A DNA stretch of 64,000 nt, taken from IMG/VR virus record IMGVR_UViG_3300035661_000001, positions 372,001 to 436,000 of that record; one strand, given 5' to 3'. Numbering within the stretch: the stretch's first letter is position 1; every line of letters starts with the position of its first letter. The notes beneath the pieces were generated by a model, which did no database searches, was not told where the DNA came from, and saw only the letters and a list, made by a program, of their open reading frames with translations. Positions 40,671 to 61,177 of this stretch are shown piece after piece. A program made the translations under genes and the position numbers.

Positions 40671-40711
40671 AAGGGCGGAGCCTCCGGGCTGCCGCCCTTT
40701 CACTTTTCTTT
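40671..40711 (+). terminator. Intrinsic terminator
   Basis: AAGGGCGGAGCC-TCCG-GGCTGCCGCCCTT plus T-rich tail; covaries with the 41629 copy. Confidence 0.8.
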
Positions 40712-40720
40712 CCCGGTAGT

Positions 40721-40810
40721 GGCACGCCGATTGCAATATACACTTCCTGTGCCAATCAAGATAGCATCATAGGTTATGGCATTAGGTTTGCATTAAGCAA
40801 GTTGCTTGCC
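40721..40810. promoter_or_regulatory. Two head-to-head sigma54 -24/-12 pairs
   Basis: TGGCACGCCGATTGC..GTGCC (40721-40753) and TGGCATTAGGTTTGC..GCAAGTTGCTTGCC (40778-40810). Confidence 0.8.
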
Positions 40811-40869
40811 ATGCTCTGCTGGTCCCCAGCGAGCTCGATCCCATCCTCCCCTAGTGTTCTGCTATTAGC

Positions 40870-41151
40870 ATGAACACCCTGCAAAACATCCTCTCGACCC
40901 TCGCCGCTCTTCACACCGCGGATGCCGCAGTGACCGCGCTCCCCGTTGATGCTTCCGACGGTGAGGAAGATTCTCTCATGGCGGAATTCACCGCCGCAGA
41001 AACTGCGCTGTGGCACATGGCTCCGGCGTGGTTCAAAGATGCCGCGAGCGTCGGCGGGCTTCATGGCACGGGTCTTGCCGGCGATCCGGTCTTCTGGGCT
41101 CTAGATGACGTGGCGGAGCTTTGCGCCATATTGGCAATCGCCGCGCTCTAG
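40870..41151 (+). CDS. Acidic hypothetical protein (paralog of 41365)
   Basis: MNTLQNILSTLAAL...ALW. Confidence 0.65.
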   Translation: MNTLQNILSTLAALHTADAAVTALPVDASDGEEDSLMAEFTAAETALWHMAPAWFKDAASVGGLHGTGLAGDPVFWALDDVAELCAILAIAAL

Positions 41152-41364
41152 CAACAAGCATGCCAAGGAGAGCTCGCTCGGGCTCTCCTTCCGGTTCGCA
41201 GTGCAAGACTGCTACGTCGTTGGTGACGAGATCGTGCTTGACGTCGAGCACCTTGTGGGCGGTGAATGGCGCCCGATCTTCATCTTCAGCGTCAAGGAAG
41301 CGGAGGAGCGAATCTTTACGCTGCCCATCTAGAGTCCCATCCTGTATTGGCTGACGGGTATGGC

Positions 41365-41622
41365 ATGAGCTACCTCGTCAAGCTGAATCAAGTTCTCGCG
41401 ACCCTCGCAGCCGTTGACTCTTCCGTCTTCACTGGAACGGAGGATGAGATGGCTCTGTGGGACGCGGTGATCGAAGCAATCATCGAAATCGTCCGCCTTG
41501 ATCCGACGGCGGCGAAGTTCACGGCTGGCATGGATCCTGCCGCCATCTGGCAATTCGCGCAGGAATCCGATTTTGATTCTTGGCGCGATGTCGCCGCCAG
41601 GATCGACGTATCAAGCAAGTAA
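41365..41622 (+). CDS. Acidic hypothetical protein (paralog of 40870)
   Basis: MSYLVKLNQVLATLAAV...ALW. Confidence 0.65.
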   Translation: MSYLVKLNQVLATLAAVDSSVFTGTEDEMALWDAVIEAIIEIVRLDPTAAKFTAGMDPAAIWQFAQESDFDSWRDVAARIDVSSK

Positions 41623-41628
41623 CGTGCC

Positions 41629-41660
41629 AAGGGTGGAGCCTCCGGGCTACCACCCTTTCG
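41629..41660 (+). terminator. Intrinsic terminator
   Basis: AAGGGTGGAGCC-TCCG-GGCTACCACCCTTT. Confidence 0.75.
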
Positions 41661-41677
41661 GTTTACCGTTCTACTGT

Positions 41678-41710
41678 GGTACGAGGTTTGCATAATGCAA
41701 TTAGCTAGCC
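41678..41710. promoter_or_regulatory. Head-to-head sigma54 pair
   Basis: GGTACGAGGTTTGC-ATAAT-GCAATTAGCTAGCC. Confidence 0.75.
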
Positions 41711-41769
41711 AACTCCGGAGTACAAGCTAGAGAGCTCGGTCCCATCCTCTAACAGATATCGGCAGTGAC

Positions 41770-42099
41770 ATGGCAACTCACCTGATGGTTCTCGGTAATC
41801 ACGAAGCTGTCAACGCGTCTCTCTTCAACCCCAACCGTTACAGTTTCCGGTGGAATGCGGATCACACGGCGTTCGAGCCCATCCTCGCCCGGTACTGGGA
41901 CGATGCCAGCTACATCGCGAAGCGCTCACGCGACACCGCCCCGGAATGGAAGAAGCCCATCGCCGAGCCGGATTTCCATGAGAGGAGCTGGCTCGCGTTC
42001 CAGGCTTTCATGCACGATCCCATCGATGATGTGCAGGAGCCCGAGTTCTTCCCGCGTGACGCGACGGAGACGATGCCTGCCGATCACATGTGGTTCTGA
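41770..42099 (+). CDS. Hypothetical protein
   Basis: 109 aa, high GC3. Confidence 0.65.
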   Translation: MATHLMVLGNHEAVNASLFNPNRYSFRWNADHTAFEPILARYWDDASYIAKRSRDTAPEWKKPIAEPDFHERSWLAFQAFMHDPIDDVQEPEFFPRDATETMPADHMWF

Positions 42100-42134
42100 G
42101 AGATTCCCATCCTTCCACGAGGAGAGCCTGAATC

Positions 42135-42311
42135 ATGCAAACGCCTTCCATCAAGCATCCCGAGAGCAACCACCTTTTCGCCCGGCGCGCCGCCGAGGAT
42201 CAGATCCTCGTCGCTGGAGCCGGCACCTTCGCCACCGTCGAGGATGGCAAGCTGTTCACCACACCAATCGCCGCTCCCGATCAGTTCGCGAAGTGGCGCC
42301 CGGTCCAGTGA
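42135..42311 (+). CDS. Small hypothetical protein (58 aa)
   Basis: GGAG RBS; manual translation MQTPSIKHPESNHLFARRAAEDQ... Confidence 0.55.
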   Translation: MQTPSIKHPESNHLFARRAAEDQILVAGAGTFATVEDGKLFTTPIAAPDQFAKWRPVQ

Positions 42312-42359
42312 GGGGAGGGAGAGGATCGCCTCTCCCCTTCTCTTTTGCCGTTCTGTCAT

Positions 42360-42463
42360 GGCACACTGTTTGCAAACTGCGAGAGTTATGCCATTCGCTA
42401 TTCCCGAATCGCGAATCACGGCTAGCCGTTGGCATGGGTTGTGCAATATGCAATGTCGAAGCC
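42360..42463. promoter_or_regulatory. Two head-to-head sigma54 pairs after a terminator hairpin (42310-42346)
   Basis: GGCACACTGTTTGC-AAACT-GCGAGAGTTATGCC (42360-42392); GGCATGGGTTGTGC-AATAT-GCAATGTCGAAGCC (42431-42463). Confidence 0.8.
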
Positions 42464-42749
42464 AAGCCCGGATCGGACCCTCCGGGCGCACTAAGAGGAG
42501 ACCGGCGACCCATCCTCTAACAGGATCCCCGAGGACTACCGGCAACGCTGCGAAAGCGAAGCTGGACTCGGGTGGAACGCTCCCCGGTCCCAAGCTGCAA
42601 GAGCAGGGTCCAAACGGTGCGGCACCGTCAACAACGCCGCGGCGATAGGGAATACCTACCGCACCCTAATCGGAGGAGAGAGAGACCCATCCCCGAAAGG
42701 GGTTCTCCAAAGGGGTCAGTCACTCTCCAACCAAAAAGGATTCACCGCC

Positions 42750-44081
42750 ATGAACTCCCTCACGTCGCTCTCTTCCGCCGTCGCTCTCCCCGATAACTCC
42801 GCGTTCTTCGCGGATCTCCTCTCCGATGATCCCGAGATTCGGGCGCTGCTGGACGCGGCGTATGGTAAGGGTAGCACCAAAGTGCCCGGCGTCACCGTGA
42901 CCCGCTCCGGTAGCCTCAACGCCCGTCCCCTCATCGGCGGGATCAAGCCCGGCGGACGCAAGTCCCGTGCCAACGGCGATAAGCCCGCTCGGGCTCCGAA
43001 GGCGGACAAGCCCGCCAAGGAAGCGAAGGTGGAGCCCATCCTCGTCGAGCTGACGTGGAAGTCCAACGGTTCGGGCGCTGCCCGCTTCCTGGAAGCTCTC
43101 TCAATGGCGGGGAAGCGGTTCCGCTGCTACGAGACGGATGGTGTTGACGTGGTTTCCGGCGAGTGTCACTCGGCGGGAGATCCCGTCCTCGCCTCCAACG
43201 GCGCCCCTCTCACGTACTTCGCTGGCGACATCGCCCAGCGGTCCGACGAGCGCGCCGCGATCGAAGCCTGCTTCGACGGCTCCTCGCGCTCCGAAGCGCT
43301 CGGGACGCAACTGGATCAAGCGCGCATGCTCGCCCAAACGGCGATACGGCGCGGCATGTCGGGCAAGGTCGAGCACCGCGCCTTTCACTACAGCGGGATC
43401 GACAATTCCCCGCGCACCGTGGTTCACGCGGTGTATCACACGGGCGTCGTCGCCTCGGCTCACCCCTGGCGTTCTCCGGATGCTCACTCGGCGATCTGGT
43501 CGGTCGAGGGTTACGTGAAGGGACTCCCCCGTCCCATCCAGAAGCTGCTCGGGGACATGTGTGCCCGTGAGCGTCTGGCGACCGACGAGGTGATCACGCT
43601 GGGCAAGCTCCGCGCCTTCGTGGTCGCGGAGGATCAGGAGAGCTTCGAGTCTCTCATGAACCGGGAGTACCCCTCGTCAAAGGAGATCGAGACCATCTTC
43701 GCCCTGGATGGCATCACGGTTCAGGACTACACGGTGGTCGAGAAGCTGCACCCGGTCGTGGTCGCTCTCAAGCGCGAGCGTGGCATGAGACTCCTCGACC
43801 GTCTCGCCAAGCTGGAAACGTTCGCGGCGATCCGTCTCGCTGAGGTTCAGCGCAAGATCGATGCCGTCGAGGGCGGCGATACCGCCAAGTCGATCGCCGA
43901 CATGTACGCCGAAGCGGACGCATGCGGATCGATCGCGACGCTGGAGGAAAGTATCCTGTCCTGCTACGATCCGCAGGCGCGCATGTACTACACCCTGCCC
44001 GTGGGCACGGTGATCCCCGCCGGTCCCATCGAGCGCCTCGCGGCGCACCTCGCCGAGCACAGCCTGGATCTCACGAAGTGA
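42750..44081 (+). CDS. Large hypothetical protein (443 aa) with basic N-terminal linker
   Basis: AAGGA RBS, strong GC3 bias, no recognisable family. Confidence 0.8.
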   Translation: MNSLTSLSSAVALPDNSAFFADLLSDDPEIRALLDAAYGKGSTKVPGVTVTRSGSLNARPLIGGIKPGGRKSRANGDKPARAPKADKPAKEAKVEPILVELTWKSNGSGAARFLEALSMAGKRFRCYETDGVDVVSGECHSAGDPVLASNGAPLTYFAGDIAQRSDERAAIEACFDGSSRSEALGTQLDQARMLAQTAIRRGMSGKVEHRAFHYSGIDNSPRTVVHAVYHTGVVASAHPWRSPDAHSAIWSVEGYVKGLPRPIQKLLGDMCARERLATDEVITLGKLRAFVVAEDQESFESLMNREYPSSKEIETIFALDGITVQDYTVVEKLHPVVVALKRERGMRLLDRLAKLETFAAIRLAEVQRKIDAVEGGDTAKSIADMYAEADACGSIATLEESILSCYDPQARMYYTLPVGTVIPAGPIERLAAHLAEHSLDLTK

Positions 44082-44691
44082 TCCCGCCGGGGAGGGTTCG
44101 CCCTCCCCATTCTCACCCGGACGGATAGGCGAGCGCCTATCCGTCCCCTCCCTGGGATCGATCCCATCGGAGAGGAGAGAGGCGGCTCACAAGCGCTGGC
44201 GGGCGGGCGTGAGTATCTTAACGCGCACGTCTCTCTTCTCTCCGCTGCGACCCATCCTTGGAGCACAGCACCGGCTAACCCATCCTCATTCACACGTGGA
44301 GAAGGTCATGCAACATCTCATCATCGGGTTTCTCATGGGCGGCGCCATCCTGGCGATCGAGCAGGCGGACCGGCAGATCGTCCCGATTCTCACCGGCGTC
44401 CCCATCACTTCCGAGACGCGCTGGATCAGCGCGGACGCCTACAACCGGGCGGGCGAGTTCCTCTCCGAGTGCGAAAGCCGCACCGGCTGCTTCACCTCCT
44501 GATCCCATCCCCAGCTACGTCGAGGTTCCTCATGAATGATCGAATGGGTACGTACGTCACCACGGTCGTGGGCGGACGCCTGTGCATCAACGACGGGGTC
44601 GGCTGGCATCCCATCAGCGCCGCCTGGCTCGCCCAGCACGGCTGCTTGTTCCGCAAGCGGTAACCAATCCCATCCTCTGAGGAGACTCCAC

Positions 44692-45009
44692 ATGTGGAGA
44701 GACGATGAGATCAACAGGCTGGATCATCCAGCCCCCGACGGATATGTCCGCGTGGCTGCGGAAGATCCTCCCATCGACAAGGATGACGACTACGCTCTCA
44801 TCATCTGCCACGTCGTTTCCTGGCTCGGGAAAGGTTTCATGCCGGCGGTTCGATACTTCGATCGCTCCGGCACCTTTCGTCCCTGCCACAACGGCGACGC
44901 CCATCGCGGAGAGGATCGAGCTGCCTATGACTCCGCTGTCACGGAAGGGCGCAAGATCCTCGCCGACATGCAAGCGCTCACGAAGTCCCACACGTCTCCC
45001 ATCTCCTGA
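44692..45009 (+). CDS. Hypothetical protein
   Basis: GAGGAG RBS, MWRDDEIN... Confidence 0.6.
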   Translation: MWRDDEINRLDHPAPDGYVRVAAEDPPIDKDDDYALIICHVVSWLGKGFMPAVRYFDRSGTFRPCHNGDAHRGEDRAAYDSAVTEGRKILADMQALTKSHTSPIS

Positions 45010-45016
45010 GGACGCC

Positions 45017-45250
45017 ATGAACCAGAACAGCAAGACCGCGCCCGTTCGCAACGCCACCCACGACGAGGCTCTTCTCGCCGACGAGGCGAAGTATGCCCCC
45101 GGCGGACGTGTCCCCGCCCATCTCCAGGTCGACGACTACGAACCCGCGGGCTTCACTCGCATCACTCGTGCTCGCCCGAGCAAGCGCGCCCAGAGCGCGG
45201 AGCGCGAGCGGTTCGACACGCGCCGGCAGCCGCGCGAAGGCAAGTACTGA
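45017..45250 (+). CDS. Hypothetical protein
   Basis: GAGG RBS, MNQNSK...; stop followed by TCCCATC. Confidence 0.6.
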   Translation: MNQNSKTAPVRNATHDEALLADEAKYAPGGRVPAHLQVDDYEPAGFTRITRARPSKRAQSAERERFDTRRQPREGKY

Positions 45251-45403
45251 TCCCATCGGGGATGTAGGTCTCGGGTTGGTAAGGCTGGATCATAGGCACT
45301 TCGGTGCCCCCGCACCAATCTTTGCTCTCTCTATAGGAGAGGGGTAAGAAAGGTTTTGAACGGCGGTTGAGTCCAGCGCTCGAAACTGAACGCATGTTTC
45401 TGC

Positions 45404-45481
45404 GGGGTCTTCCCATCGATGGTTAGAGTCCTGCCGTCAAACGTAGGATGGTGCGGGTTCGACTCCCGCAAGACTCCACCA
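45404..45481 (+). tRNA. Atypical/degenerate tRNA-like element (8-bp acceptor stem, G3:U70, encoded CCA)
   Basis: GGGGTCTT/AAGACTCC-A-CCA; T-arm GCGGG-TTCGACT-CCCGC; anticodon arm TCCTGC-CGTCAAAC-GTAGGA; 5' side of the D-stem is CCCATC. Confidence 0.6.
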
Positions 45482-45621
45482 AGAAGATCACGTGAAGTAT
45501 CTTCGTACATCCCATCAACGACGACGCGACCGCGGAGTCAAGGCTCGACACCGCGAACCGGGGATGCGTTGGAACCGTCGCAAGGACAATCCTTCACCAA
45601 AGCCCGCCACGGCTACGCCTG

Positions 45622-46068
45622 ATGTTCAGGAACACACCTAAATCCCATCTCACCAACCTTCGGCACGAGGTCATGATGAATCAGATCAGCGAAAAGGCGA
45701 AAGCGTTCAAGGCGGCAATGGTGGCGAAGCGAGCCAAGGAGAAGCTCCAGACCGCCCATCGAGATGAGCAGCACGCCAAGCGTACCGAGGCGGGTTACGT
45801 CGACACCGCGCAGAGCGAGCGCGCCGACGACTTCGACTGCGCCCGAGCCTGGGACGCCATGGAGGCGTCCGCGGAGAAGACCTCCCATCGACACTCCGCG
45901 AAGCACGAGGCGCAGGTCGCCCGTCTCGCCGCCGCGCAGCAGGCACGGGTCGCCCGCGGGGAAGCGGACCCCGAGCCCATCCCGGTCAACGACCGCAGCC
46001 ACAACGAGCCCTTCCCGGTCGTGGAGTACAGCCCGGTCCGCGTCGCGCCGGATTTCGACGAAGAGTGA
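45622..46068 (+). CDS. Hypothetical helical protein
   Basis: High GC3; start may be 45673 (GAGG RBS). Confidence 0.65.
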   Translation: MFRNTPKSHLTNLRHEVMMNQISEKAKAFKAAMVAKRAKEKLQTAHRDEQHAKRTEAGYVDTAQSERADDFDCARAWDAMEASAEKTSHRHSAKHEAQVARLAAAQQARVARGEADPEPIPVNDRSHNEPFPVVEYSPVRVAPDFDEE

Positions 46069-46123
46069 TCACCTGCCCCGGCGCCGAAAGGTTCCGGGGC
46101 TTCGCTCTTTTCTTTTCTGTCTT

Positions 46124-46197
46124 GGCACGGGCTTTGCAATATACACTTCTCATGCCAACCCAATGGCACATCTTTTGCAATCTGCAATGTCCGGTCC
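46124..46197. promoter_or_regulatory. Two head-to-head sigma54 pairs after a terminator (46075-46120)
   Basis: GGCACGGGCTTTGC-AATAT-ACACTTCTCATGCC (46124-46156); GGCACATCTTTTGC-AATCT-GCAATGTCCGGTCC (46165-46197). Confidence 0.8.
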
Positions 46198-46239
46198 AAA
46201 CCCCGGAGCACCCATCCTCTAGAAGCCCCCGGCTAACCC

Positions 46240-46701
46240 ATGCACTACGCAATCGAGATCGTCGGTTCTTTCCTGGGTGTTGCCATTCCCGCGTGGTTGC
46301 GCGTGTTCGACTGCCGCAAGCCCATCGGGGAGGAGTTCTCCGCCAAGGCACCCTGGACGTATACCTACGAAGGCAAAACGTTCAGCCCGGCTTTGCTCGG
46401 CTCCGAAACCGCCGCGGTGGATCTCGGATTGCGAACCGAGAAGGAGAACAACGCAAGCTGCCCATCCTCCGGCTCGGGTTACGGCGACACTCGGACCAAT
46501 GAGTCGGAAGCCCATCTGGCAGTGACTCGCATGATCGAGAGCGCCATCCAGCATCACGAGAAGTGGCTCTGGGCAAACGCTCAACCCAAGTCGACCGATG
46601 GCGGCGGGTGCTACTACCAGCCCATCGCGGTCGCCCTCTGCAACTTCGGCTGGTCGGTCATCGCTGACGGTCGGCACTACGTCGTCCCCCAGTACGTCTA
46701 A
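46240..46701 (+). CDS. Hypothetical protein
   Basis: 153 aa, high GC3, TAA-CCCATC end. Confidence 0.6.
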   Translation: MHYAIEIVGSFLGVAIPAWLRVFDCRKPIGEEFSAKAPWTYTYEGKTFSPALLGSETAAVDLGLRTEKENNASCPSSGSGYGDTRTNESEAHLAVTRMIESAIQHHEKWLWANAQPKSTDGGGCYYQPIAVALCNFGWSVIADGRHYVVPQYV

Positions 46702-46730
46702 CCCATCTCAATCTTCAGAAGAGGTACGTC

Positions 46731-47174
46731 ATGCAAGTCATTCTGATGAGTGGTATCCCGGGAAGCGGTAAAGCGACCCTCGCCAAGGAATTGGGTGGTC
46801 CCCTGACCGTTGTCTGTTCTGCCGACGATTACTTCGTCGATCCCATCGAGGGCGCGTACAACTTCGATCCATCCAAGTTGTCGGAAGCGCACGGCGACTG
46901 CATGCGCAAGTTCGTTTCCCATCTGCTCCTCGACGAGGCGGATACCATCATCGTCGACAACACCAATCTGACGGCACTGGAGCTTGCTCCGTACGTCGCC
47001 GTGGCGGCAGCCCATCATGCCAGCGTGGAGATCGTTACCGTTAACTGCAACGTGGATGTTGCGGTGGAACGGAACACCCACAATGTTCCCATCGGTTCCA
47101 TCCGTCGGATGGCAAGGACGCTCCTCGACCGGGCGCTCCCGCCTTACTGGAACGTCATTCAGACGGTGCGCTGA
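46731..47174 (+). CDS. AAA_33 / polynucleotide-kinase-like P-loop protein
   Basis: GIPGSGKAT, SADDYF, IIVDNTN, RNTHNVP. Confidence 0.85.
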   Translation: MQVILMSGIPGSGKATLAKELGGPLTVVCSADDYFVDPIEGAYNFDPSKLSEAHGDCMRKFVSHLLLDEADTIIVDNTNLTALELAPYVAVAAAHHASVEIVTVNCNVDVAVERNTHNVPIGSIRRMARTLLDRALPPYWNVIQTVR

Positions 47175-47191
47175 CCCATCCGAGAGGTGTC

Positions 47192-47401
47192 ATGAAGTTC
47201 ATCGACTGCAATAGTCCGGGCTGCATCTTCGTCGGAGAACAGGTTCACTGTGACGGTCTCTCCTACCTGGGAGGTCATCCCTGTCCCATCTCCGACGAGC
47301 TGGCAACCAAGCTGATGACGGACCCGGGCGACGAGGAAGGTCCCTGGACTCTCCAGCCGGCGCCGGCGTTCTGGGCTGACAACAACGGCAAGCCTGACTG
47401 A
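47192..47401 (+). CDS. Small Cys-rich hypothetical protein
   Basis: GAGG RBS; TGA-CCCATC end. Confidence 0.55.
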   Translation: MKFIDCNSPGCIFVGEQVHCDGLSYLGGHPCPISDELATKLMTDPGDEEGPWTLQPAPAFWADNNGKPD

Positions 47402-47419
47402 CCCATCTGAGGAGCACAC

Positions 47420-47614
47420 ATGATCGTTAAGGTAACGTTCAGCATTTCCGGGAACGGTCAAAACGGAATGGGATGTGTTCCCGAGCCTGGGAAGTTCGAC
47501 ACCGATCCCATCACCTGGGCGATCGGTTTGGAATACTTCTCCGCTTCCGAAGCGCTCGTGTGCTGGGATCCGTTCCAGGACGGTTCCCTCTACTGGAAGC
47601 CCAAGGGCGACTGA
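47420..47614 (+). CDS. Small hypothetical protein
   Basis: GAGGAG RBS; TGA-CCCATC end. Confidence 0.55.
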   Translation: MIVKVTFSISGNGQNGMGCVPEPGKFDTDPITWAIGLEYFSASEALVCWDPFQDGSLYWKPKGD

Positions 47615-47643
47615 CCCATCTTCTACCTTCCACGGTGATCGTC

Positions 47644-47913
47644 ATGAATCGTAAACCTAGGACGAACGGACCGAACCTGCACATGTGCAATCCTTTGGCG
47701 GTGCCTACCCCATCGAAAAGTTACATGTTCGGCGTGGAGATCACCGATCAGAACCAAGCCGAGCTGTACGATGCCTATCGGTCGGGACAGTCTATCGGGG
47801 ATGCGTTCTGGTTCGCCGAATGCATGTACGATAAAAAAGAGCGTCTTGCTCTGATCGACCGTCGCGTCGCCGGGGGCATGTCGTTCCACCCATCCTCTCA
47901 CTCACTACGGTGA
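47644..47913 (+). CDS. Hypothetical protein
   Basis: MNRKPRT... high GC3. Confidence 0.5.
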   Translation: MNRKPRTNGPNLHMCNPLAVPTPSKSYMFGVEITDQNQAELYDAYRSGQSIGDAFWFAECMYDKKERLALIDRRVAGGMSFHPSSHSLR

Positions 47914-48443: not shown

Positions 48444-48472
48444 CCCATCCGTTAACCGAAGTCGAGGTTGCT

Positions 48473-48721: not shown

Positions 48722-48725
48722 GGAT

Positions 48726-49570: not shown

Positions 49571-49632
49571 TGGGCATCATTGGGCGCTGCCTCGGAAGGG
49601 GTCGCGCCCTTTTGCCGTTTCGTTTTTTGGTT

Positions 49633-49665: not shown

Positions 49666-49706
49666 ATCTCGATTCCCATCCTCTAATTAGCTGTCCGGTG
49701 ATTACC

Positions 49707-53221: not shown

Positions 53222-53238
53222 CCCATCGAGGAAGAACC

Positions 53239-53508: not shown

Positions 53509-54322
53509 CCCATCGTCTCGACCATCGGAGAATGTTTATCATGTGTGACAAGATCGGTTGCCCTGGTCCTGCATCATGCCCCTCCGTTGAAGACGAGAAG
53601 TTGGTTGCGATGACCGACCCATCGGCATTCCTTCTGCGTGAGGTTCAGCGGTTCGAGGGCATCACGATTCTGATTGGGGATTGCCGCGATGGCGATGCCT
53701 ACTTCGCCCTGCCGCGGGTTCTCACATTCGAGGACAAGACCTTCGCTCTGACCGGCTGGAACAGCGATGCCCATCAAGCCTATTGGAAGGTCGGTGGTCT
53801 GATCGCCAAGCGCGGGGCGCGGATCGATCGCCCGATTGAAGGGTCAGAGCTAGGCTTCCCATCCGGGTCACCGGCGCGGGAGTATGCGCAACCCTGCGCG
53901 GAGGTAATCATGAAGTGGACGTGCTTCGGAGTTTGGAAAAACCGTTTCGTATTCCGAACGGACGACCCATCTGGATCGTGGGTATCGATGGTGTGGCACT
54001 GGCGCGTACGGGTGCGTCCGTGAAGCCGCAATTGAGAGCGGTGCTCAGCTACAACCAGCTACTACCCATCCTCAGCGATTATGAGCTGAAGATGGTCATC
54101 GCTCGGTTGAACACCGACTACTTCGCCGAGGCATACCATCGACGGGTGTACCTCGGGATCCTCGCCCAGAACGGCTGGACCGATGAAGGGTTCGATCAAG
54201 AGACGCTTCGTCGTATCGATGCTGGATGGGATATCAAGACGCCGCCGCCGCGGGGTGATCATCCGATGGCGAAGCCCGAGACTCGAAAGAGTTCCGGGCT
54301 TTTGCCCGTTCTGTTTTTTGGT

Positions 54323-54355
54323 GGCACGAGCCTTGCATATAGCACTTTACGTGCC
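54323..54355. promoter_or_regulatory. Head-to-head sigma54 pair after a terminator (54271-54320)
   Basis: GGCACGAGCCTTGC-ATATA-GCACTTTACGTGCC. Confidence 0.8.
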
Positions 54356-54912
54356 CAGCAAGTGCGTTCCTAGTAAATTCCGGGCACCCATCCTCTAGCA
54401 GTCTGGTCGGTAAGAGCAAGTCGTTGCCTACCGATAACAAGGTGGGCGGCGCATTGGGAAGCAACGAATCCCATCTAAATTGTTAGGGTTGACTGTTCAG
54501 GGTCATACTGTTTAAGGTCTGGAATATCTGAGTCCCGGCACCCTTCGATCGATGTAGTTGCAGTCCCATCCGTTTGGTGGTATCGCATAAACCAGCCAGT
54601 ACGTTTGTCGGTAGTCGAATAAACCGTCATCACGCGCCAATTGAGTTTCGGGGAAGCCGATCCGAATGTAGGTCCCGAGTAAAGGAACACAGCCCATCTA
54701 CGGAAAATTTGGGCTAGCAATCTCAAGCAGCGCGACGCAGCAGAAGGGCGCCGTTTCGTTTTGGTCGGGAGTCTAAGATTGTCCCATCAGAAACGTGGCG
54801 GAACTGGAACTGGCACTCAACGAATGAAAGGTAGGTTCGGCTTATGCCACGAGACTCGCCGTGATAGTCGTTGGTTCGGGGGATACAGGGTGGAGCCCAT
54901 CCCCAATTTGTG

Positions 54913-54993
54913 GGCAGTGTTTCCGGTTGTTGGTATCCGGTGAGGGGTTTGAACCGCCCTTCATAGTGGGTTCGATTCCCATCATTGCCTCCG
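54913..54993 (+). tRNA. Degenerate tRNA-like element
   Basis: Acceptor GGCAGTG/CATTGCC-T-CCG; D-stem CCGG/CCGG; T-arm GTGGG-TTCGATT-CCCAT; irregular anticodon loop TTTGAACCG. Confidence 0.55.
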
Positions 54994-55012
54994 CTAGTGA
55001 TCCCGGTTAGGG

Positions 55013-55399
55013 GTGGATGAAAAGACACGGGTCTCTCATATATTAAAGACCACCGTCGTGATCACTGGCAACAACTTCTATCGACTCATCTTTTCATCGA
55101 AGGTGTCTATGGCAACGGAAACATTCGGTCGTTCGCCGTACTACGGCTGGGAGATTCTTTCCATCGACGAGGCACTTGCCAAGATTGGGATCGAATCCCA
55201 TCTCGTCAATGGTTTGTCTGATCTCACCAGACAGCACAATCGTCTGTACTACAAGGAGGGCGAGCGGATCCACAAGCCCACGGAGTCGCAGCTCCGTCGG
55301 CGCTGGGCTTTTCCCATCCGAGGCAGCGAGTTCAAGTTCGTCGTCGTCCAGCGCAAGGAAGAGGGCGCCAGCGGTTACGAGTTCTGTATCGGGACCTGA
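55013..55399 (+). CDS. Hypothetical protein
   Basis: ORF ending TGA-TCCCATC; start uncertain. Confidence 0.5.
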   Translation: MDEKTRVSHILKTTVVITGNNFYRLIFSSKVSMATETFGRSPYYGWEILSIDEALAKIGIESHLVNGLSDLTRQHNRLYYKEGERIHKPTESQLRRRWAFPIRGSEFKFVVVQRKEEGASGYEFCIGT

Positions 55400-55704
55400 T
55401 CCCATCGGCGGAGGAACCATATTCTATCTCGAAGGTTTCTTGTTCTGCGAAGGGCTTACCGCCGCGGACCATGGCAATGCCATGATGGAGGCGGGGAAAG
55501 TAGCAGACGTCGCGACCCATCGGACTGTCATCCTGGTCTATCGTACCGTGGGGGACACCGAGATGATCTGCACCAAGATTCAATCTTTCGAGGATTGCCG
55601 GAGGGCTTGTCCCATCGATAAAAAAGATGCGGACGATCTGCTTCGCGATTACATGAAGTCGGCGTTCACGATGCTCTCTGACTTGCGAGGGTAGGAGACC
55701 CATC

Positions 55705-55926
55705 ATGGAAATCGACAAGCTGGTCAAGGACCTGACGGAAAACGCCGGGCTCTATCCCGGATCACGGGTGGTTATTGGAACATCCTCTCAGGTTCTCAAC
55801 AGGGAGATCCGGGGGATGGTCGCGGCGAAACGACTTCCCATCGCCGAAGGTTCCACGCTGGGCGACGAGGATGGCGAATGCAGCAGCCTATTCCTCGTGA
55901 CGACGATACCTGTTTCGGCAGAGTAA
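55705..55926 (+). CDS. Hypothetical protein
   Basis: AGGAG RBS with CCCATC between RBS and ATG; TAA-CCCATC end. Confidence 0.6.
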   Translation: MEIDKLVKDLTENAGLYPGSRVVIGTSSQVLNREIRGMVAAKRLPIAEGSTLGDEDGECSSLFLVTTIPVSAE

Positions 55927-56029
55927 CCCATCAACGGAGATCGATCATGACCATTGCAAGTGCCGTTCTAGCTCAAGGTTCGTTAAAGAGCAGGCGCACC
56001 ACCAAAATCTGATCCCATCGGAGATTGAC

Positions 56030-56266
56030 ATGTATAGTGTTCACCTCTTCTTCCTGATCGATCGTGACACTCTCAAGGTCGACCGCGCTGCGATCTGGAG
56101 CGATGGTACTCCGTGCATCGATCAGTCTCGATACATCCCGGTCAAGTGGACCTCATGGGATGGCAAGACCCATCAAGAAGCGCACGATCGAGCCACGAAC
56201 TATCTCCGAACTCATGGCAACAGCGCCATCGGTGAAGCGCTCACGAAGATGGTACTCGGGGGATAA
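56030..56266 (+). CDS. Hypothetical protein
   Basis: GGAG RBS; TAA-CCCATC end. Confidence 0.6.
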   Translation: MYSVHLFFLIDRDTLKVDRAAIWSDGTPCIDQSRYIPVKWTSWDGKTHQEAHDRATNYLRTHGNSAIGEALTKMVLGG

Positions 56267-56450
56267 CCCATCAGAATGGAGCGATCTTCATGGAAGAGCT
56301 GAGCCTCAAAGGTATTTCTCTGAAGGGAAGGAATCGTATCCGGGGGAAGGAATCGTATCCGGGAATTGGGATCCATCTGGATGGTTCTCCTTTACCGAAA
56401 CACGGTTCGCTTCAGCCCCATCCGCCTCCCCGGCGGAGGATGGTTATGGT

Positions 56451-56810
56451 ATGAAACACGATCATTTACGTGTCATCCTTCTCGCCGAATTCATGAGCGA
56501 TGATACCGCTCTAGAAGATGCCGTGCTCGCAATCTATCGGAAGCAAACCGAAGATGAGAAACGGCAGGGAGCGACAACCCATCACAACAAGGTTGGCTTC
56601 AGCGGGTGTGATGCTCGTCAAGCCACCTACTGTGCCAAGTGGTTGCTCGACACGAACGGGAAACGGAATCCCCATCGACATCTGTCTGGCAGATTCTTGG
56701 ATTGGGCACGACGGGCGATGCCGAAGTACGCCGGACAACTGGCGACGATCGTGGCAGCGAAGGAAGAATCTTATCTCGTCGGCGAGAGGATTGCGATTCA
56801 GCAGTTTTAA
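56451..56810 (+). CDS. Phage hypothetical protein
   Basis: AVLAIY.KQT.DEK....T.HHNKVGFS..DA...KYAGQL; GGAGGA RBS. Confidence 0.65.
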   Translation: MKHDHLRVILLAEFMSDDTALEDAVLAIYRKQTEDEKRQGATTHHNKVGFSGCDARQATYCAKWLLDTNGKRNPHRHLSGRFLDWARRAMPKYAGQLATIVAAKEESYLVGERIAIQQF

Positions 56811-57212
56811 TCCCATCTTTCGAGGACATCATTCCATGACTACCGACGAAGCAATCGAGGACATCTGGCGGCGGGTCGCGACCTCTGTTCGGGAGGACGT
56901 CGACCCATCGGTTCTCCAGTGGGTGTCTGACAGACTGTGCCGCGCTGATTGGTGGTACGGTGATGGCAAAACGACCGACAACAAGACTGTCGGTTGGGGA
57001 AACAAGCACCCATCTACAAAGGATTTTCCAGAACGATCATGATCGGTAACAAGGTGACGCCGGCGAAGCGATACTTTGTTGGTCATCTTCAGATACGGGC
57101 AGCCGATGCCAAGGTCTCCCTCCGGGAGATGCTCGGTACGAACACGTTCCCATCGTTACCGCTCGACGCCGAAGGCAATCGACTCTACCTCTAAACCATC
57201 TACGGAGGCTAC

Positions 57213-57434
57213 ATGAAACAAGCATACGACGTGGGCGACAACGTGGATGGTACGGTCACCAAGGTGGGCAGGACCCATCTGACCCTTACCATCGGAGATA
57301 CCACGGGACGACTGCCGCTCTCGGATGTGCGTGCGGTTGCTCGACGTGCGATCCCCATCGTCGGAGCCGACATGAACGTGACGGTCGCAGGGACGAAACG
57401 CGGTAAGCTGGTTCTGAGTTTCAGCCCGGGCTGA
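57213..57434 (+). CDS. Single S1 RNA-binding domain protein
   Basis: YDVGDNVDGTVTKV...GRLPLSDV...VGADMNVTV......KLVLS; GGAGG RBS. Confidence 0.7.
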   Translation: MKQAYDVGDNVDGTVTKVGRTHLTLTIGDTTGRLPLSDVRAVARRAIPIVGADMNVTVAGTKRGKLVLSFSPG

Positions 57435-57629
57435 TCTCAATCGTTGCGCAGTCGAAAGATGAGAGATCATGCACAACGGATCAGGCGTGAGGATCAAAAA
57501 ACCTACACCGAAGACCGCCCATCCGTTGGAGACTTCGCGCAACAACATCTGTAAGAGATAAGGAGAAAGGATGCGAATCCGAGATGGTCCGCTCTGAATG
57601 ATGTTGACGGGTCGCGAGCTTGACATTCC

Positions 57630-58004
57630 ATGAGGATCAAGCTCGCGACTTCCTTGTTCCCATCGGAGGATAAGATGTTCGGTACTCAAGAGACAACGCA
57701 AAAGTTTCAGAAGCTCGGCTTCTCTCTTCCCAAGCGGAGAGGCGGTGGTAACCCAGACTTCGGACCCATCCTGGCGTTCATCGAGCGTAGGATTGCCGGG
57801 GTGATGGAGTTCTATACCAACTGCCGTTCCGAGGCGGTGTTCTCTCGTGAGCTTCGGGAAACGATCAACCGAGAACTTGCACCCATCATCCCCGACACCG
57901 AGAAGACATTCAACCTGGAGCCGATGAACTTGGTTCTCATGGTTCGGACTACCAAGGACCCTGGTGTTCTTTTGGTCCGCGCGGAAAACCCCAATCTTTG
58001 CTGA
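57630..58004 (+). CDS. Hypothetical protein
   Basis: 124 aa; start may be 57675 (GGAGGA RBS). Confidence 0.55.
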   Translation: MRIKLATSLFPSEDKMFGTQETTQKFQKLGFSLPKRRGGGNPDFGPILAFIERRIAGVMEFYTNCRSEAVFSRELRETINRELAPIIPDTEKTFNLEPMNLVLMVRTTKDPGVLLVRAENPNLC

Positions 58005-58444
58005 TAGCATCGAGGTGCCACGTGGGCATTCCCATCTTCATCGGATTCTCTGAAGCGAACGTCGCTTTCTTTAACCTTCATTCCAAAAAGGTTGGCGACG
58101 ACTTCTCGGTCGATGCAAACTTCTGCGGCGATCCTTCTGATCCCATCAACAAGAAAAGGTGTTTCAGTGGCGAAGAAGACGACGAACGGAATCATCAGTG
58201 CCGCAACCGCGACGTGCGCCGCTCGCCGCGCGCTTGTCGGCGTTGCTCACCAAGCTGAACGTCCAGATCAGGGACGGAAGCCGGTCTTTCTACGCGGGAG
58301 TCCGGGAGAAGGATATTCCCGACGGGATGTTCCCCTTCGGCGCGCGCGCGTTCCAGAAGAAAGATCTGGGCTGGAAAGTGAAAGTCGGCGAGCGCGATGG
58401 TTCGATCAAGGTCCGTCTCCCTGGCGAGCCGGGAGACCCATCTG

Positions 58445-58648
58445 ATGGAAAAGCAAGTCAATGCCGGGGGAGAGCAGCTCTTCGCTCTCGCCCTGAAGAT
58501 CCCATCGGGACTCTCCGAAGCGGAAGTCACGAGGCGAGTTCATTCGATGCTGTTCGGTCTCAGCGCGGCGGCGAAGACCGCCGGAGTCGAGGTCGTCAAG
58601 GGTCCGGTTCTGGAGCGGTTCATTTCTGCTCATCTGACCGGCAAGTGA
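58445..58648 (+). CDS. Hypothetical protein
   Basis: GGAG RBS, MEKQVNAGG... Confidence 0.5.
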   Translation: MEKQVNAGGEQLFALALKIPSGLSEAEVTRRVHSMLFGLSAAAKTAGVEVVKGPVLERFISAHLTGK

Positions 58649-59245
58649 AACAAGAAAGTCGAGGAGGTCCCATCGTGCAGAAAAGTTCTTCGTGGTTCAT
58701 GGTTGCCGCGGTTCTCGCGGCGGTGTCTTCGCTGGGCTGCGCCGATCGTGGCAAGCCTCCCGAGGTTCCCAAGACGTTGACCAGCACCATCCCATCCGTG
58801 ACGCCGGCGGACCCGAACGTGTCGCGCTGGTGTTTCTCCACCGCCGAGACCATGACGTGCGTGCAGCGCACCACGCTCCCGAGCGGCGTCAAGAAGGTGG
58901 AGATGATCTACATTCCCATCCTTCCTTCGGCGCGGTAAATCTATGTCGAAGACCACTATCAAGACCAGCGAGCTTCAAGGGGCGTTCGATCGATACCGCC
59001 GGCTCCCCCTTGCTGGTGATCTGGAGCCAAACCTGGACTTTCAGTGGTGGCAAGAGGGAGTCGCCAATCTCGCCGAGGTGACTCCCATCATCGCCAAGCA
59101 GTACCGAGAGGACCGGACTGCTTGCATCATGCACGGTCCGTGCTCAATTCCCGGGCGGTGATCTCGACGCGATCCGCCGCTTCTGTGAATGGTGTCTTTT
59201 TGGTGGTGTGGGCAACATGGTTCTCGCAACGCATCAGGATGCGCC

Positions 59246-59515
59246 ATGACCCATCCCGTGACCGGGCTTGACCTTCACGAAGGGGACGCCGAGACTGACC
59301 TCGCCGCGTGGATCAAGTATGATCATCGACGTGGCGAATATGAGGGGGACAAGTACCGTTATGATTCTTGCCGGACAACGGCGGGAGCGGATCATCATCG
59401 CCCTCTCGTGCTCAAAACACGCAAAGCATACGCGGCTGCCCATCAGGCTTTAACCACGTTAGGTTATGAGCCTTCCGGTTACGAACCGGAACCTGAGACC
59501 TACTTCAACAAGTGA
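59246..59515 (+). CDS. Hypothetical protein
   Basis: MTHPVTGLDLHEG... Confidence 0.5.
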   Translation: MTHPVTGLDLHEGDAETDLAAWIKYDHRRGEYEGDKYRYDSCRTTAGADHHRPLVLKTRKAYAAAHQALTTLGYEPSGYEPEPETYFNK

Positions 59516-60460
59516 GCCAATCATGATGAACTTCTGCAAAGGTCTAGTCGAGTGGATCAAGGACGATCCTCCCCGCTCGCTTGCCTTGATCGGCGTGGGA
59601 GCAATGGTCACCTTGATCGTTCTCTGGATGATTAGGTGAATCGTGAAGCTCAAAGAGCTGCGAATTTTTCTCGACACCCATCTTGCCGATGGTACGCTCA
59701 CTGACGAGATGGAAATCAAAAGCCGTACCGGCGGATATGAGGCGCAGCATCTTGCACACGTTTCAATCGAGCGCGATCATAACGGGATCGAATACCTCGA
59801 AAAAGAGGTCCTGAACTTCAGTGCCGATCCGTGAGACTCATTCAGGAGAATCGATCATGAGCTACGACACAATCATCCTTCTTTTCATCGTGTTCTTTGC
59901 TGGGATCGGATTCCTGATTGCCCATCTTACCGGCATGATGATCGGTGGCTTGATTGCCTTCTTGATCATTCAGTTTCTGAGGTATCTCGCTCTTTCGTTC
60001 TGAGGACGATTGTACAGCGACGTACAACATCCAACCCATCGGATCTCCATGATGATGAGTCTCATGTTACAAAACGAAGATATGAAATACTCGCTTCCGA
60101 CCCGCTGGGAGATGTACGGCATCTTTCGTGGTAAGAGCGAGTATGGTCGTCGTTCCAGGTATCAGGCTCGCATGAATCGGAACGATGCTTATCTTGCCGC
60201 CAAGGGCAAGAGCAAACCCATCAAACATGGGGAACGATCGTGAGAGAGACTGACGACGAATGGTATACGCGGATACGAACCACCCCGGTCGAATCGTATT
60301 ACGAAGTCAATCCGTTGGTGAGTGATCTCGCGGAGATCGCCCGCCGCTGTGCGACCGACCCATCGCTGCGCGCTATCAAGGATCAAGATGCAACGATGGT
60401 GCCTTGTACCTGCGATGAGTGCGAAGGCACCAGTTTCGTCTGACCCATCCAAGGAGAAGT

Positions 60461-60700
60461 ATGCTGAACGATAACAAAGTGTTGAAAGGTTTGAGCAACG
60501 TCCTCACAGGCATTGCTTTCATTCCGCCCTTCGTGCTCAGTTTTCCCATCGGAGCGGTGGCGGATAAGCTGGAGCGCCGGTTTGGAGCGGACGCCGCGAT
60601 CTATTTCCTGGGCGCCTGCTGGCTTCCCATCGGCTTCACTGCTTTCGTGGCAGCGACCGTGATCGACCAGATCGCCCCGCCTGACAGCGTGCGGCTCTGA
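60461..60700 (+). CDS. Small membrane protein
   Basis: AAGGAG RBS; two hydrophobic segments. Confidence 0.6.
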   Translation: MLNDNKVLKGLSNVLTGIAFIPPFVLSFPIGAVADKLERRFGADAAIYFLGACWLPIGFTAFVAATVIDQIAPPDSVRL

Positions 60701-60769
60701 ACAAAAACTAGACGGGAGCGAGGGGCGCCGGCATGCCCCTCGCTCCCTTTTTCTTTTCTTATTTTGAGT

Positions 60770-60802
60770 GGCATGGTCTTTGCACTCTGCGAAGTTCGTG
60801 CC
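60770..60802. promoter_or_regulatory. Head-to-head sigma54 pair after a terminator (60714-60765)
   Basis: GGCATGGTCTTTGC-ACTCT-GCGAAGTTCGTGCC. Confidence 0.8.
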
Positions 60803-61177
60803 AACAACAATCCCATCCGTTAAGAGCGGCGGGAAAGAAAGCCAAACGATGACGCAACGGTGACGACGGGGAAGCGTTGCGCTTCCCATCCACACGTCTA
60901 GTGTTTCTAGATGCAAGAGGAGCAACCAACAATGACCATGACTGCGATCTCGCACCGCGACGAAAACGGCAACTACGTTCCGCAGAACACCGACGCCGAA
61001 GACCTCGCGTCGATTCCCATCGACAACAGCGCTCTGCTGGACACCATGATGCTGGCGCTGACTCTCGGCGCTTACGTCCTCGGCTGCATCCTCTACGTTG
61101 TCGCTGGCTGATTCTACCGCGGTAACCGACAACCCATCGTCACAGATCATTCACACCAAAGGGAGACCTGGAATCAT

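Follow-up and report, generated by a model that had tools for sequence, protein, structure and literature searches.

Why do seven loci in the early arm of a jumbo phage each carry a hairpin, a sigma54-like palindrome and an extended copy of the word CCCATC, one directly after the other? The loci lie in a window of 64,000 nt (positions 372,001 to 436,000 of IMG/VR record IMGVR_UViG_3300035661_000001), which is part of the 451,956-bp genome of an uncultivated jumbo phage. The first-pass annotation described them as one repeated transcription-unit cassette and suggested that the first CCCATC of each transcript is a special loading site, comparable to nut/boxA sites, that ties the CCCATC lattice and the sigma54 elements into one system. 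The observation is confirmed, and all coordinates given for it check out. The interpretation is only partly supported: the parts do form one module tied to the lattice, but a loading site for antitermination is not supported. Instead, we favor a reading in which each cassette terminates one unit and restarts the next from a host sigma54-type promoter, the whole being part of a genome-wide one-strand word system that we could not match to any described system.

The module and its surroundings consist of the following elements (window coordinates; terminators and sigma54 boxes as predicted from sequence):

39590..39605 (-): leftward sigma54-class box (TGGCACGGGGTTTGCC) at the abrupt low-GC to high-GC boundary, forming a half cassette; it faces the - strand trypsin-like protease gene at 38612-39337 (Pfam Trypsin_2 hit) and is part of a start-of-arm block conserved in relatives
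39614..39787 (+): cluster of five CCCATC copies (39614, 39646, 39663, 39738, 39782) at the very start of the early arm, breaking the 70-bp spacing rule; the first ATG (39811) lies 29 nt after the last copy
39614..64000 (+): CCCATC lattice of the early arm; the window holds 183 copies on + and 5 on -, gaps mostly run 80-120 bp and few are under 70 bp, and the lattice continues beyond the window with falling density
40671..40712 (+): cassette 1, intrinsic terminator (hairpin 40671-40699, -23.5 kcal/mol, plus T-tract)
40720..40754 (+): cassette 1, sigma54 box type A (TGGCACGCCGATTGCA, then N14, then TGCCA)
40777..40811 (+): cassette 1, sigma54 box type B, a 35-bp quasi-palindrome
40840..40850 (+): cassette 1, leader word CCCATCCTCCC; a start codon without Shine-Dalgarno sequence lies at 40870, 30 nt downstream
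41629..41668 (+): cassette 2, intrinsic terminator (hairpin 41629-41657), a paralogue of terminator 1 with a compensatory C-G to T-A change
41677..41711 (+): cassette 2, sigma54 box type B
41741..41751 (+): cassette 2, leader word CCCATCCTCTA(AC); ATG at 41770, 29 nt downstream, without Shine-Dalgarno sequence
42310..42350 (+): cassette 3, intrinsic terminator (hairpin 42310-42342)
42359..42464 (+): cassette 3, two type B sigma54 boxes (42359-42393 and 42430-42464)
42509..42519 (+): cassette 3, leader word CCCATCCTCTA(AC); a 240-nt leader follows before the 443-aa ORF at 42750
46075..46118 (+): cassette 4, intrinsic terminator (hairpin 46075-46100)
46123..46198 (+): cassette 4, type A box (46123-46157) and type B box (46164-46198)
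46211..46221 (+): cassette 4, leader word CCCATCCTCTA(G); ATG at 46240, 29 nt downstream, without Shine-Dalgarno sequence; the gene is conserved in the related phage record G003
49582..49628 (+): cassette 5, intrinsic terminator (hairpin 49582-49609); a reverse word (GATGGG) sits 13 nt upstream at 49569
49632..49666 (+): cassette 5, sigma54 box type B
49675..49685 (+): cassette 5, leader word CCCATCCTCTA(A), 29 nt after the -12 GC; ATG at 49707
54268..54318 (+): cassette 6, intrinsic terminator (hairpin 54268-54306, -25.3 kcal/mol)
54322..54356 (+): cassette 6, sigma54 box type A (TGGCACGAGCCTTGCA)
54387..54397 (+): cassette 6, leader word CCCATCCTCTA(G); about 600 nt without a called ORF follow, still carrying lattice copies and a sub-threshold tRNA-like match
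60714..60765 (+): cassette 7, intrinsic terminator (hairpin 60714-60747, -32.2 kcal/mol)
60769..60803 (+): cassette 7, sigma54 box type B
60812..60822 (+): cassette 7, leader word CCCATCCGTTA(AG), which fits CCCATC-N3-TAA, 29 nt after the -12 GC

An eighth cassette lies at genome positions 445370-445433, about 9 kb past the window. The seven hairpins fold at -21.5 to -32.2 kcal/mol (z -2.2 to -6.7) and each is followed by an interrupted T-tract. Hairpins 1 and 2 fold identically, with one C-G pair replaced by T-A, as the first-pass annotation had stated. In all eight cassettes the hairpin ends 15-23 nt (mostly 22-23) before the first box, the spacer being T-rich, and the strongest hairpin-plus-T-tract candidates in the early arm are mostly the ones followed by a box.

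Exact matches to TGGYAY-N5-TTGCW on the + strand start at 40720, 40777, 41677, 42359, 46123, 46164, 49632, 54322 and 60769, and a box with one mismatch starts at 42430. With up to one mismatch allowed, the window contains 30 matches against 7.0 expected. Genome-wide, 11 of the 16 + strand matches to a slightly looser pattern are cassette boxes, all within genome 412.7-445.4 kb. Each cassette has one or two boxes (TGGCAY-N5-TTGCA), which are all on the + strand and lie in intergenic gaps, and the type A boxes match the extended TGGCACG-N4-TTGCA consensus exactly. Each box sits in a 35-bp quasi-palindrome whose right arm is a weaker mirror image: 55 boxes from eight phage records give the consensus TGGCAYg...tTTGCA...TGCAA....c.TGCCAa, with the mirror arm in register in 40/55 and 39/55 sites, against at most 1 in shifted registers.

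The first CCCATC copy follows 8-44 nt after the boxes. The five copies of CCCATCCTCTA, at 41741, 42509, 46211, 49675 and 54387, are the only ones in 452 kb, i.e. 5/8 leader copies against 0/352 other CCCATC copies (Fisher p = 1e-9), and for CCCATC-N3-TA[AG] the counts are 6/8 against 1/201 in the early arm. That the extended motif might be no more frequent after the palindromes than among other CCCATC copies had been named beforehand as the refuting outcome, and it was not observed. Thus, in this phage the first copy is distinct from the other copies.

Is this arrangement peculiar to one genome? The same cassette occurs in at least seven related phage records of 180-480 kb, and the word after the promoter tracks each lineage's own word. 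Cassettes with a lineage-specific word appear in the related records G001, G002, G003, G005 and G006, the word being CTCCCATTCAC in G005, CCCATC-N3-TAACGGA in G001 and CCCATCGCCAAACGG in G006. The start-of-arm block is likewise found as a homologous block ...TTTGGGAGGCAA-N5-GTGCCAAC... in G003, and a similar block is present in G005. The extended leader motif is the long form of a family-wide gene-junction element, CCCATC-N3-WAACGG. In G001, 83 copies of this element, all on the + strand, precede nearly every early gene, with the ATG 30-31 nt downstream in 35 of 60 cases, a variable sequence in between, and the upstream stop codon inside or directly before the element. In G006 all 14 copies are on one strand.

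In the phage studied here the word-to-ATG distance peaks at 28-30 nt, and nothing beyond the 6-mer is conserved in its copies. Four of the seven leaders in the window have an ATG 29-32 nt after the word and lack a clear Shine-Dalgarno sequence, which points to a start element for the first gene, although in cassettes 3, 6 and 7 no ATG lies about 30 nt after the long-form word. A Shine-Dalgarno-like sequence was found in 1/5 unit-first genes, but in 42/56 internal genes (p = 0.024). The word is also purged: in the late region CCCATC occurs 0 times against ~9 expected and GATGGG 0 times against ~30 expected, and in the middle region GATGGG occurs once against ~55 expected, whereas six reverse copies are tolerated in the early arm. 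The bare 6-mer is not visibly depleted in the sampled stretches of G001 and G005, whose words are longer.

Taken together, we suggest with moderate confidence that the cassettes divide the high-GC arm, which is about 35 kb long, consists almost entirely of ORFs with no family match and is presumably the first part expressed, into short transcription units. The anatomy of the cassettes, its statistics and its conservation across eight phage records rest directly on the sequences, as does the absence of a recognisable gene for sigma54, an enhancer-binding protein or RNA polymerase in the phage (no match to PF04552, PF00158, PF00562 or PF00940). That host sigma54 holoenzyme restarts transcription after each terminator, by contrast, is inferred from sequence alone, as are promoter use, start sites and termination. 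Sigma54 promoters need an enhancer-binding ATPase, but none is encoded by the phage and no upstream activator site is evident. In this view the long form is kept only at the first copy of each unit, where it would be the start element of the first gene, read by whatever reads the whole lattice, while internal genes keep the 6-mer core plus a Shine-Dalgarno sequence. With less confidence we infer that this reader is phage-specified and acts on DNA as a directional, promoter-like start signal, as the word varies by lineage and the reverse word is purged genome-wide. However, a bare 6-mer is very little information for a promoter, in-gene copies every ~100 bp are odd for one, and the sharp 30-nt spacing to the ATG in G001 would fit a translation-level element equally well.

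Could the leader word nevertheless be a nut/boxA- or ops-like site at which a processivity or antitermination factor loads onto RNA polymerase, with the lattice copies keeping it engaged? The restriction of the long form to the first copy after each promoter in this phage, the position of the word on the non-template strand throughout, its start exactly 29 nt after the -12 GC in three cassettes and its mostly unpaired state in predicted leader folds are in line with such a model. Yet every terminator is followed at a fixed ~22 nt by its own promoter, which is the layout of stop-and-restart rather than of read-through, the leaders share no boxB-like hairpin and their predicted folds differ from leader to leader, the word does not obviously resemble the boxA or ops consensus, and in G001 the long form is not peculiar to transcript starts. 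Moreover, a factor that reads the non-template strand does not explain the purge of the reverse word. We thus consider this model unlikely, although antitermination is not excluded on present evidence. A translation-level role of the long form, either positioning ribosomes about 30 nt upstream of start codons that lack a Shine-Dalgarno sequence or binding a translational repressor in the manner of RegA, with the cassettes otherwise as described above, would fit the G001 spacing, the unit-first genes without Shine-Dalgarno sequence and the unpaired motif in most predicted leader folds, and it has a precedent in SAS, whose authors suggest a role in translation initiation (PMC3203893). It remains doubtful, however, as it does not explain the in-gene and non-coding lattice copies, the genome-wide purge of the reverse complement, or a G001 copy that lies directly before a terminator with no gene after it.

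Alternatively, the quasi-palindromes may be operators for a dimeric phage or host regulator that resemble sigma54 promoters only by chance, the CCCATC element being the real early promoter, read by an unrecognised phage sigma factor or RNA polymerase. The dyad symmetry conserved in eight phage records, which the sigma54 reading leaves unexplained, argues for this, as do the first + strand unit (39811-40664), which has only the cluster of CCCATC copies and no + strand sigma54 box upstream, the purge of the reverse word and of the word in the late region, the ~70-bp minimum spacing, which is close to the RNA polymerase footprint, and a weak Sigma70_r2 hit at window 4662-4793. On the other hand, the left arm is much better conserved than the right and matches the extended sigma54 consensus, including exact GG-N10-GC spacing, no phage RNA polymerase was found, and nothing beyond the 6-mer is conserved in the copies of this phage, so that this reading, too, appears improbable. 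A chiefly mobile or recombinogenic nature of the cassettes, as in PeSLs (see below), with their repetition reflecting spread by recombination and regulation as a by-product, is a tentative possibility at best. Cassettes 1 and 2 are paralogous, including the end of the upstream gene, the type A boxes of cassettes 1 and 4 share their downstream sequence, one G001 cassette is flanked by two copies of the junction element, early gene content differs greatly between this phage and G003, and a relative in run X5 shows indels in this stretch. Nevertheless, the X5 joints do not fall at cassette borders, and the fixed internal geometry conserved across distant lineages argues for function. The only close relative available (G004) is 99.98% identical and has no indels, i.e. 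it is too close to be informative on shuffling at cassettes.

Which described systems come closest? The PeSL cassettes (promoter-early stem-loops) of T4-type phages (PMC2839356, PMC4122927) are likewise small composite terminator/promoter motifs repeated in intergenic gaps, between the upstream stop codon and the downstream start, of hyperplastic regions rich in ORFs with no family match, and use the host polymerase for early genes, as is inferred here. The early arm studied here is hyperplastic as well, with 59 small ORFs that have almost no family matches and only a few genes shared with G003. The promoter here, however, is sigma54-class rather than sigma70, sits in a quasi-palindrome at a fixed ~22 nt after the hairpin, whereas PeSL stem-loops overlap the promoter at varying positions, and is followed by a lineage-specific word. 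The start-associated sequences (SAS/ESAS) of cluster K mycobacteriophages (PMC3203893) are also asymmetric short repeats in essentially one orientation, confined to the non-structural part of the genome and located upstream of many start codons (mostly ATG), sometimes containing the upstream stop codon and having an extended form at a subset of genes, and, as here, no reader has been identified. SAS, though, is a 13-mer that includes the Shine-Dalgarno core and lies 3-7 bp from the start, whereas the element described here starts about 30 nt upstream, has no Shine-Dalgarno core, fills coding sequence with its 6-mer core every ~100 bp in this phage, and has its reverse complement purged.

The stoperators of cluster A mycobacteriophages (named in PMC3203893) share with the word their asymmetry, their scattering through the genome in short intergenic regions, one orientation relative to transcription and a lineage-specific consensus. 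Stoperators are 13-mers with roughly 20-35 copies, bound by the prophage repressor to silence transcription, whereas the word has 360 copies, no known repressor, and a phage that shows no sign of lysogeny. Lambda nut (boxA/boxB) and RfaH ops sites are, like the leader word, orientation-specific cis elements in the 5' leader of a transcription unit, on the non-template strand or in the RNA; apart from the differences in sequence, folding and promoter layout given above, the element described here also occurs at internal genes in relatives. Finally, Chi, KOPS/SRS and the co-oriented EcoP15I sites of T7 are short asymmetric words with an extreme strand bias along the axis of replication, transcription or DNA entry, from which the present word differs in its density of one per ~100 bp, the decay of this density from one genome end, the ~70-bp exclusion zone, the link to start codons and the total purge, in both orientations, from a 165-kb late region.

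The window (372001-436000) belongs to a single contig of 451,956 bp (G000), an IMG/VR virus record with terminal repeats and an estimated completeness of 100%. Nearly all long ORFs are on the + strand, the low-GC part of the window encodes a DnaB-like helicase, ribonucleotide reductase, a PhoH-PIN protein and a release factor, and PHROGs finds terminase, DNA polymerases and helicases elsewhere in the genome. G000 is an uncultivated jumbo phage, and the public DNA runs that hold it come from microbial-mat and sediment metagenomes. A megablast of 40-60 kb against GenBank phages gave no match. The GC content is 30-35% up to window position ~39.4 kb, steps abruptly from ~32% to ~60% (55-63%) at ~39.6 kb (39400-39800), and then decays slowly through the contig end and start, reaching ~32% about 140 kb later. 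A chimeric assembly can be rejected as the cause of this jump, as contigs from two samples span it and the same step and decay occur in three related records, i.e. G001 (26 to 41%), G003 (33 to 60-68%) and G005 (41 to 58%). The assembled reads, all of them DNA contigs, confirmed the junction but gave no molecule ends. We refer to 39.6 kb onward as the "early arm", a name that is inferred from layout and gene content and not from expression data.

All seven loci described in the first-pass annotation exist, and its observation of a repeated unit of hairpin, palindrome and extended leader motif is thus confirmed. The GC-rich hairpins lie downstream of stop codons, fold at -21.5 to -32.2 kcal/mol and are directly followed by T-tracts, which are interrupted and weakest at cassette 2. 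Hairpins 1 and 2 differ by a compensatory C-G to T-A pair, as had been noted. A systematic scan of 100 kb for hairpins with T-tracts shows that the strongest candidates in the early arm are mostly the ones followed by a sigma54-like box, the distance from hairpin end to box being 23, 22, 23, 22, 22, 15 and 23 nt, and 20 nt for an eighth cassette at genome 445370. CCCATCCTCTA occurs five times in 452 kb, and each time it is the first CCCATC after a box, i.e. in 5/8 leader copies against 0/352 others (p = 1e-9), so that the condition set beforehand as a refutation, a motif no more frequent after the palindromes than among other CCCATC copies, does not hold.

The boxes carry the conserved GG at -24 and GC at -12 with the exact spacing of sigma54 (RpoN)-dependent promoters (TGGCAC-N5-TTGCW). 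There are 9 exact boxes (TGGYAY-N5-TTGCW) and 1 one-mismatch box in the window, all on the + strand, three of which fully match the longer TGGCACG-N4-TTGCA, and 55 boxes in eight phage records keep these positions. All the boxes in the window lie in intergenic gaps after a terminator and before a + strand gene. Genome-wide, such boxes are confined to genome 412.7-445.4 kb on the + strand, apart from four in-gene TGGTAT...TTGCT matches and one weak match (56953) that look like chance. A scan of 40-60 kb for sigma70 promoters found no excess (5 sites against 6.0 expected). No upstream activator site is evident, because the terminator occupies that space.

Every box fits TGGCAY-N5-TTGCA-N14-TGCCA. 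In "type B" boxes the N14 begins N3-TGCRA, and the 35-mer is then a quasi-palindrome made of two sigma54-like sites face to face, whereas in "type A" boxes (40720, 46123 and 54322) only the outer TGCCA is kept. Over the 55 boxes the mirror arm is in register in 40 and 39 sites, against at most 1 in shifted registers, but it is less conserved than the left arm. The spacers are not complementary, so this is motif symmetry and not a hairpin. A search for the exact palindromic box in 596 Gb of prokaryote genomes gave 0 hits, which is about the chance expectation, and revealed no host regulon. At the left edge of the arm only the leftward half of the box is intact, and the reverse half can therefore be a promoter in its own right. 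The features at this edge are:

36290-38600, by eye, a tandem family of ORFs of about 100-190 aa with CxxC motifs and similar C-termini (…LLLFI / …YLIFS), in an extremely C-rich and G-poor stretch with GC skew down to -0.5
38612-39337, - strand, a secreted-looking trypsin-like protease gene at the end of the low-GC part
39560-39625, a block (…TTTGGGAGGCAA-N5-GTGCCAAC…) conserved in G003 and apparently similar in G005
39590-39605, within this block, the leftward sigma54 box facing the protease gene

A pattern scan of IMG/VR, followed by genome look-ups, found seven related records, in addition to G004, which is the same phage as G000 (99.98% identity):

G001, 447,763 bp
G002, 432,844 bp
G003, 446,541 bp
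G005, 480,838 bp
G006, 178,722 bp
G007, 353,765 bp
G008, 209,766 bp

Across the relatives the cassette recurs as hairpin, T-rich spacer of 17-23 nt, box and then a word, and it is the word that differs by lineage (CCCATC, CCCATTCAC, CCCATC-N3-TAACGG). It is bare CCCATC in G000, G002 and G003, CTCCCATTCAC in G005 and G008, tCCCATC-N3-TAACGGA in G001, and CCCATCGCCAAACGG in G006. This co-variation is the strongest evidence that the cassette and the lattice of CCCATC copies belong to one system.

G001 has 83 copies of CCCATC-N3-WAACGG and none reversed. They start abruptly at 433.6 kb, occur about once per small gene for ~30 kb and then thin out by 76 kb. The downstream ATG is 30 or 31 nt from the first C in 35 of 60 cases, and the upstream stop codon is either the TAA of TAACGG (16 cases) or lies directly before the motif (17 cases). 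In a search of viral contigs, multiple copies of this type of element were seen only in G001 itself among the contigs inspected. One G001 cassette (terminator plus box, locus L047, 3917-4040) is flanked on both sides by copies of the junction element about 107 bp apart with no gene between them, which looks like insertion or recombination at the element. The G000 leader forms CCCATC-CTC-TAAC, -TAG, -TAA and CCCATC-CGT-TAAG are this same element. In G000 the distance from word to ATG also peaks at 28-30 nt and the word often abuts the upstream stop codon, but beyond the 6-mer nothing is conserved in non-leader copies. The first genes after cassettes 1, 2, 4 and 5, and the first gene of the arm, start 29-32 nt after the word, and only 1 of these 5 has a Shine-Dalgarno-like sequence, against 42 of 56 internal genes (p = 0.024). 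Thus, the long form is the full gene-junction element, kept in G000 at unit-first genes, and not a device unique to transcript starts.

The interpretation offered by the first-pass annotation, i.e. that the first CCCATC of each transcript is a special loading site comparable to nut/boxA and that lattice and sigma54 elements form one system, is only partly supported: it is one system, but a nut-like loader is unlikely. The leaders do not show a boxA consensus, compared only informally, followed by a boxB hairpin, as the seven leader folds share no RNA structure and no hairpin after the motif, and Rfam on 39-64 kb returned no known leader RNA but only two sub-threshold tRNA-like matches. These lie at 45404-45477 and 54912-54990 (tRNA-Sec, 29-30 bits against 47 required), ARAGORN finds no tRNA, and the second is located in a ~600-nt stretch without a called ORF after cassette 6, through which lattice copies continue. 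A promoter at a fixed distance after each terminator is how insulated units are built, and although this layout is not a test, it argues against read-through of the downstream terminators. The element shares with the start-associated sequences (SAS) that it is asymmetric, in one orientation, restricted to the non-structural arm and upstream of ATG starts. However, SAS is a 13-mer containing the Shine-Dalgarno core 3-7 bp before the start codon, whereas the element begins 28-31 nt before the ATG and has no such core.

Stop and restart is the logic described for PeSL cassettes of T4-type phages, which combine a stem-loop terminator with an early sigma70 promoter in hyperplastic regions rich in ORFs with no family match (PMC2839356, PMC4122927). 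The early arm fits that description, as its 59 small ORFs have almost no Pfam or PHROG matches and only a few genes are shared with G003 at ~70% identity. We therefore regard the cassette as a PeSL-like module that differs from the described ones in that its promoter is sigma54-class and not sigma70-like with an AT-rich upstream region. As to indels bounded by cassettes, G004, at 99.98% identity, has none, and a contig from a ~90% identical relative (sequencing run X5) has indels, but not at cassette borders. Within 40419-42027 this contig skips 40420-41333 and 41380-42026 and carries short replacement sequences, one of which contains CCCATC, and early-arm gene content therefore varies between strains. 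Nearby, a direct repeat inside the ORF at 40096-40449 and a (GGTCTC)n run (40189-40275 and 40406-40443) break the metagenome contigs of all samples, and many unrelated contigs pile up on the simple repeat.

The phage encodes no recognisable sigma54, enhancer-binding activator (no PF00158 match), multisubunit polymerase or T7-like polymerase, although the T7-like search had no positive control. PHROGs on 55 large proteins and PHROGs and Pfam on 60 early proteins recognised no transcription factor, and a Protein Atlas search of the 443-aa early protein was uninformative. A weak Sigma70_r2 match (22.8 bits, just under the cut-off) at window 4662-4793, in a 225-aa ORF of the low-GC region, may be a phage sigma factor for later genes. 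While the anatomy of the cassettes, their statistics and their recurrence in relatives are shown by the sequences, the use of host sigma54 holoenzyme, with the activator as the main gap in the account, transcription starts downstream of the boxes and termination at the hairpins are inferred, no RNA run being listed for this phage. Our literature searches found no description of phage early transcription from sigma54-class promoters. Sigma54 holoenzyme is silent until an ATPase activator fires it, and if the inference holds, these phages either bring an unknown activator or exploit a host response triggered by infection. As each cassette packs a strong predicted terminator, a putative sigma54 promoter and a leader into about 120-200 bp, it is directly testable in reporters and may be useful as an insulated expression part.

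The genome has 360 CCCATC copies on the + strand and 7 on the - strand. In the early arm 10 of 208 gaps are under 70 bp, against about 70 expected for random placement at that density, and the mode is 80-120 bp. There is no helical (10-11 bp) or codon (3 bp) phasing and no long-range order beyond the first neighbour. Copies lie in all three reading frames (60/34/14) and in non-coding stretches. Selection on the word shapes protein sequence, as the Pro-Ile dipeptide occurs 66 times against 17 expected (39800-64000) and 60 of the 66 are encoded by CCCATC. Outside the early arm the word is purged in the late region, window positions 1-39000 having almost no copies, whereas in the middle region CCCATC is about 5 times enriched and its reverse complement is purged.

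Copies of the word and of its reverse complement by region of G000 (observed / expected)
Late, 240-405 kb (165 kb): CCCATC 0 / ~9; GATGGG 0 / ~30
Middle, 1-240 kb: CCCATC 129 / ~25; GATGGG 1 / ~55
Early arm: CCCATC 209 / far fewer under every model; GATGGG 6 / 12-14

In the sampled stretches of G001 and G005, whose words are longer, the bare 6-mer is not visibly depleted. The cost of stray copies therefore appears to follow each lineage's own word, which points to a phage-specified reader. A host restriction site that is merely avoided can be rejected, because the word is 5-20 times over-represented on the + strand, and a purely gene-start signal can be rejected for G000, as only 37 of 141 middle-region copies lie near a possible start, with no preferred distance. 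An RNA-only function does not explain the purge of the reverse complement, but a directional DNA-level function does, e.g. one that initiates transcription, replication, nicking or translocation. Of these, the link to gene starts favours a promoter-like signal, and a minimum spacing of ~70 bp is about one polymerase footprint, although a 6-mer is very short for a promoter and no phage polymerase was found.

Being conserved across a phage family found in mats and sediments, shaping protein sequence and being purged in reverse orientation, the word system to which the leader word links the cassettes indicates a strong sequence-specific reader still to be found, and it may be new in kind. We tentatively speculate, as a possible rather than a likely reading, that the cassettes are the visible joints of a previously undescribed gene-expression architecture in a family of 180-480-kb phages, in which the genome begins with an abrupt GC step and then decays in GC content, the earliest genes are started by host sigma54 polymerase from mirror-image promoter boxes, and a phage-specified factor reads a short one-strand DNA word as a directional start or entry signal. 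In this view selection on the word would be strong enough to write Pro-Ile into early proteins, to keep copies about 70 bp apart and to erase the reverse complement from 400 kb of genome, and this would be a new class of polar genome signal and not a variant of nut, SAS, Chi or promoter cassettes. The GC step and gradient suggest that the composition of a phage genome can be graded along the order of entry or expression.

Several of the six early-arm reverse copies (GATGGG; window 49362, 49569, 52229, 52727 and 54225, and genome 445358) lie in or just before hairpins, three of which are cassette terminators. The copy at 49362 forms an 8-bp stem with the next forward copy at 49396, and a homologous terminator in G003 keeps its reverse copy.
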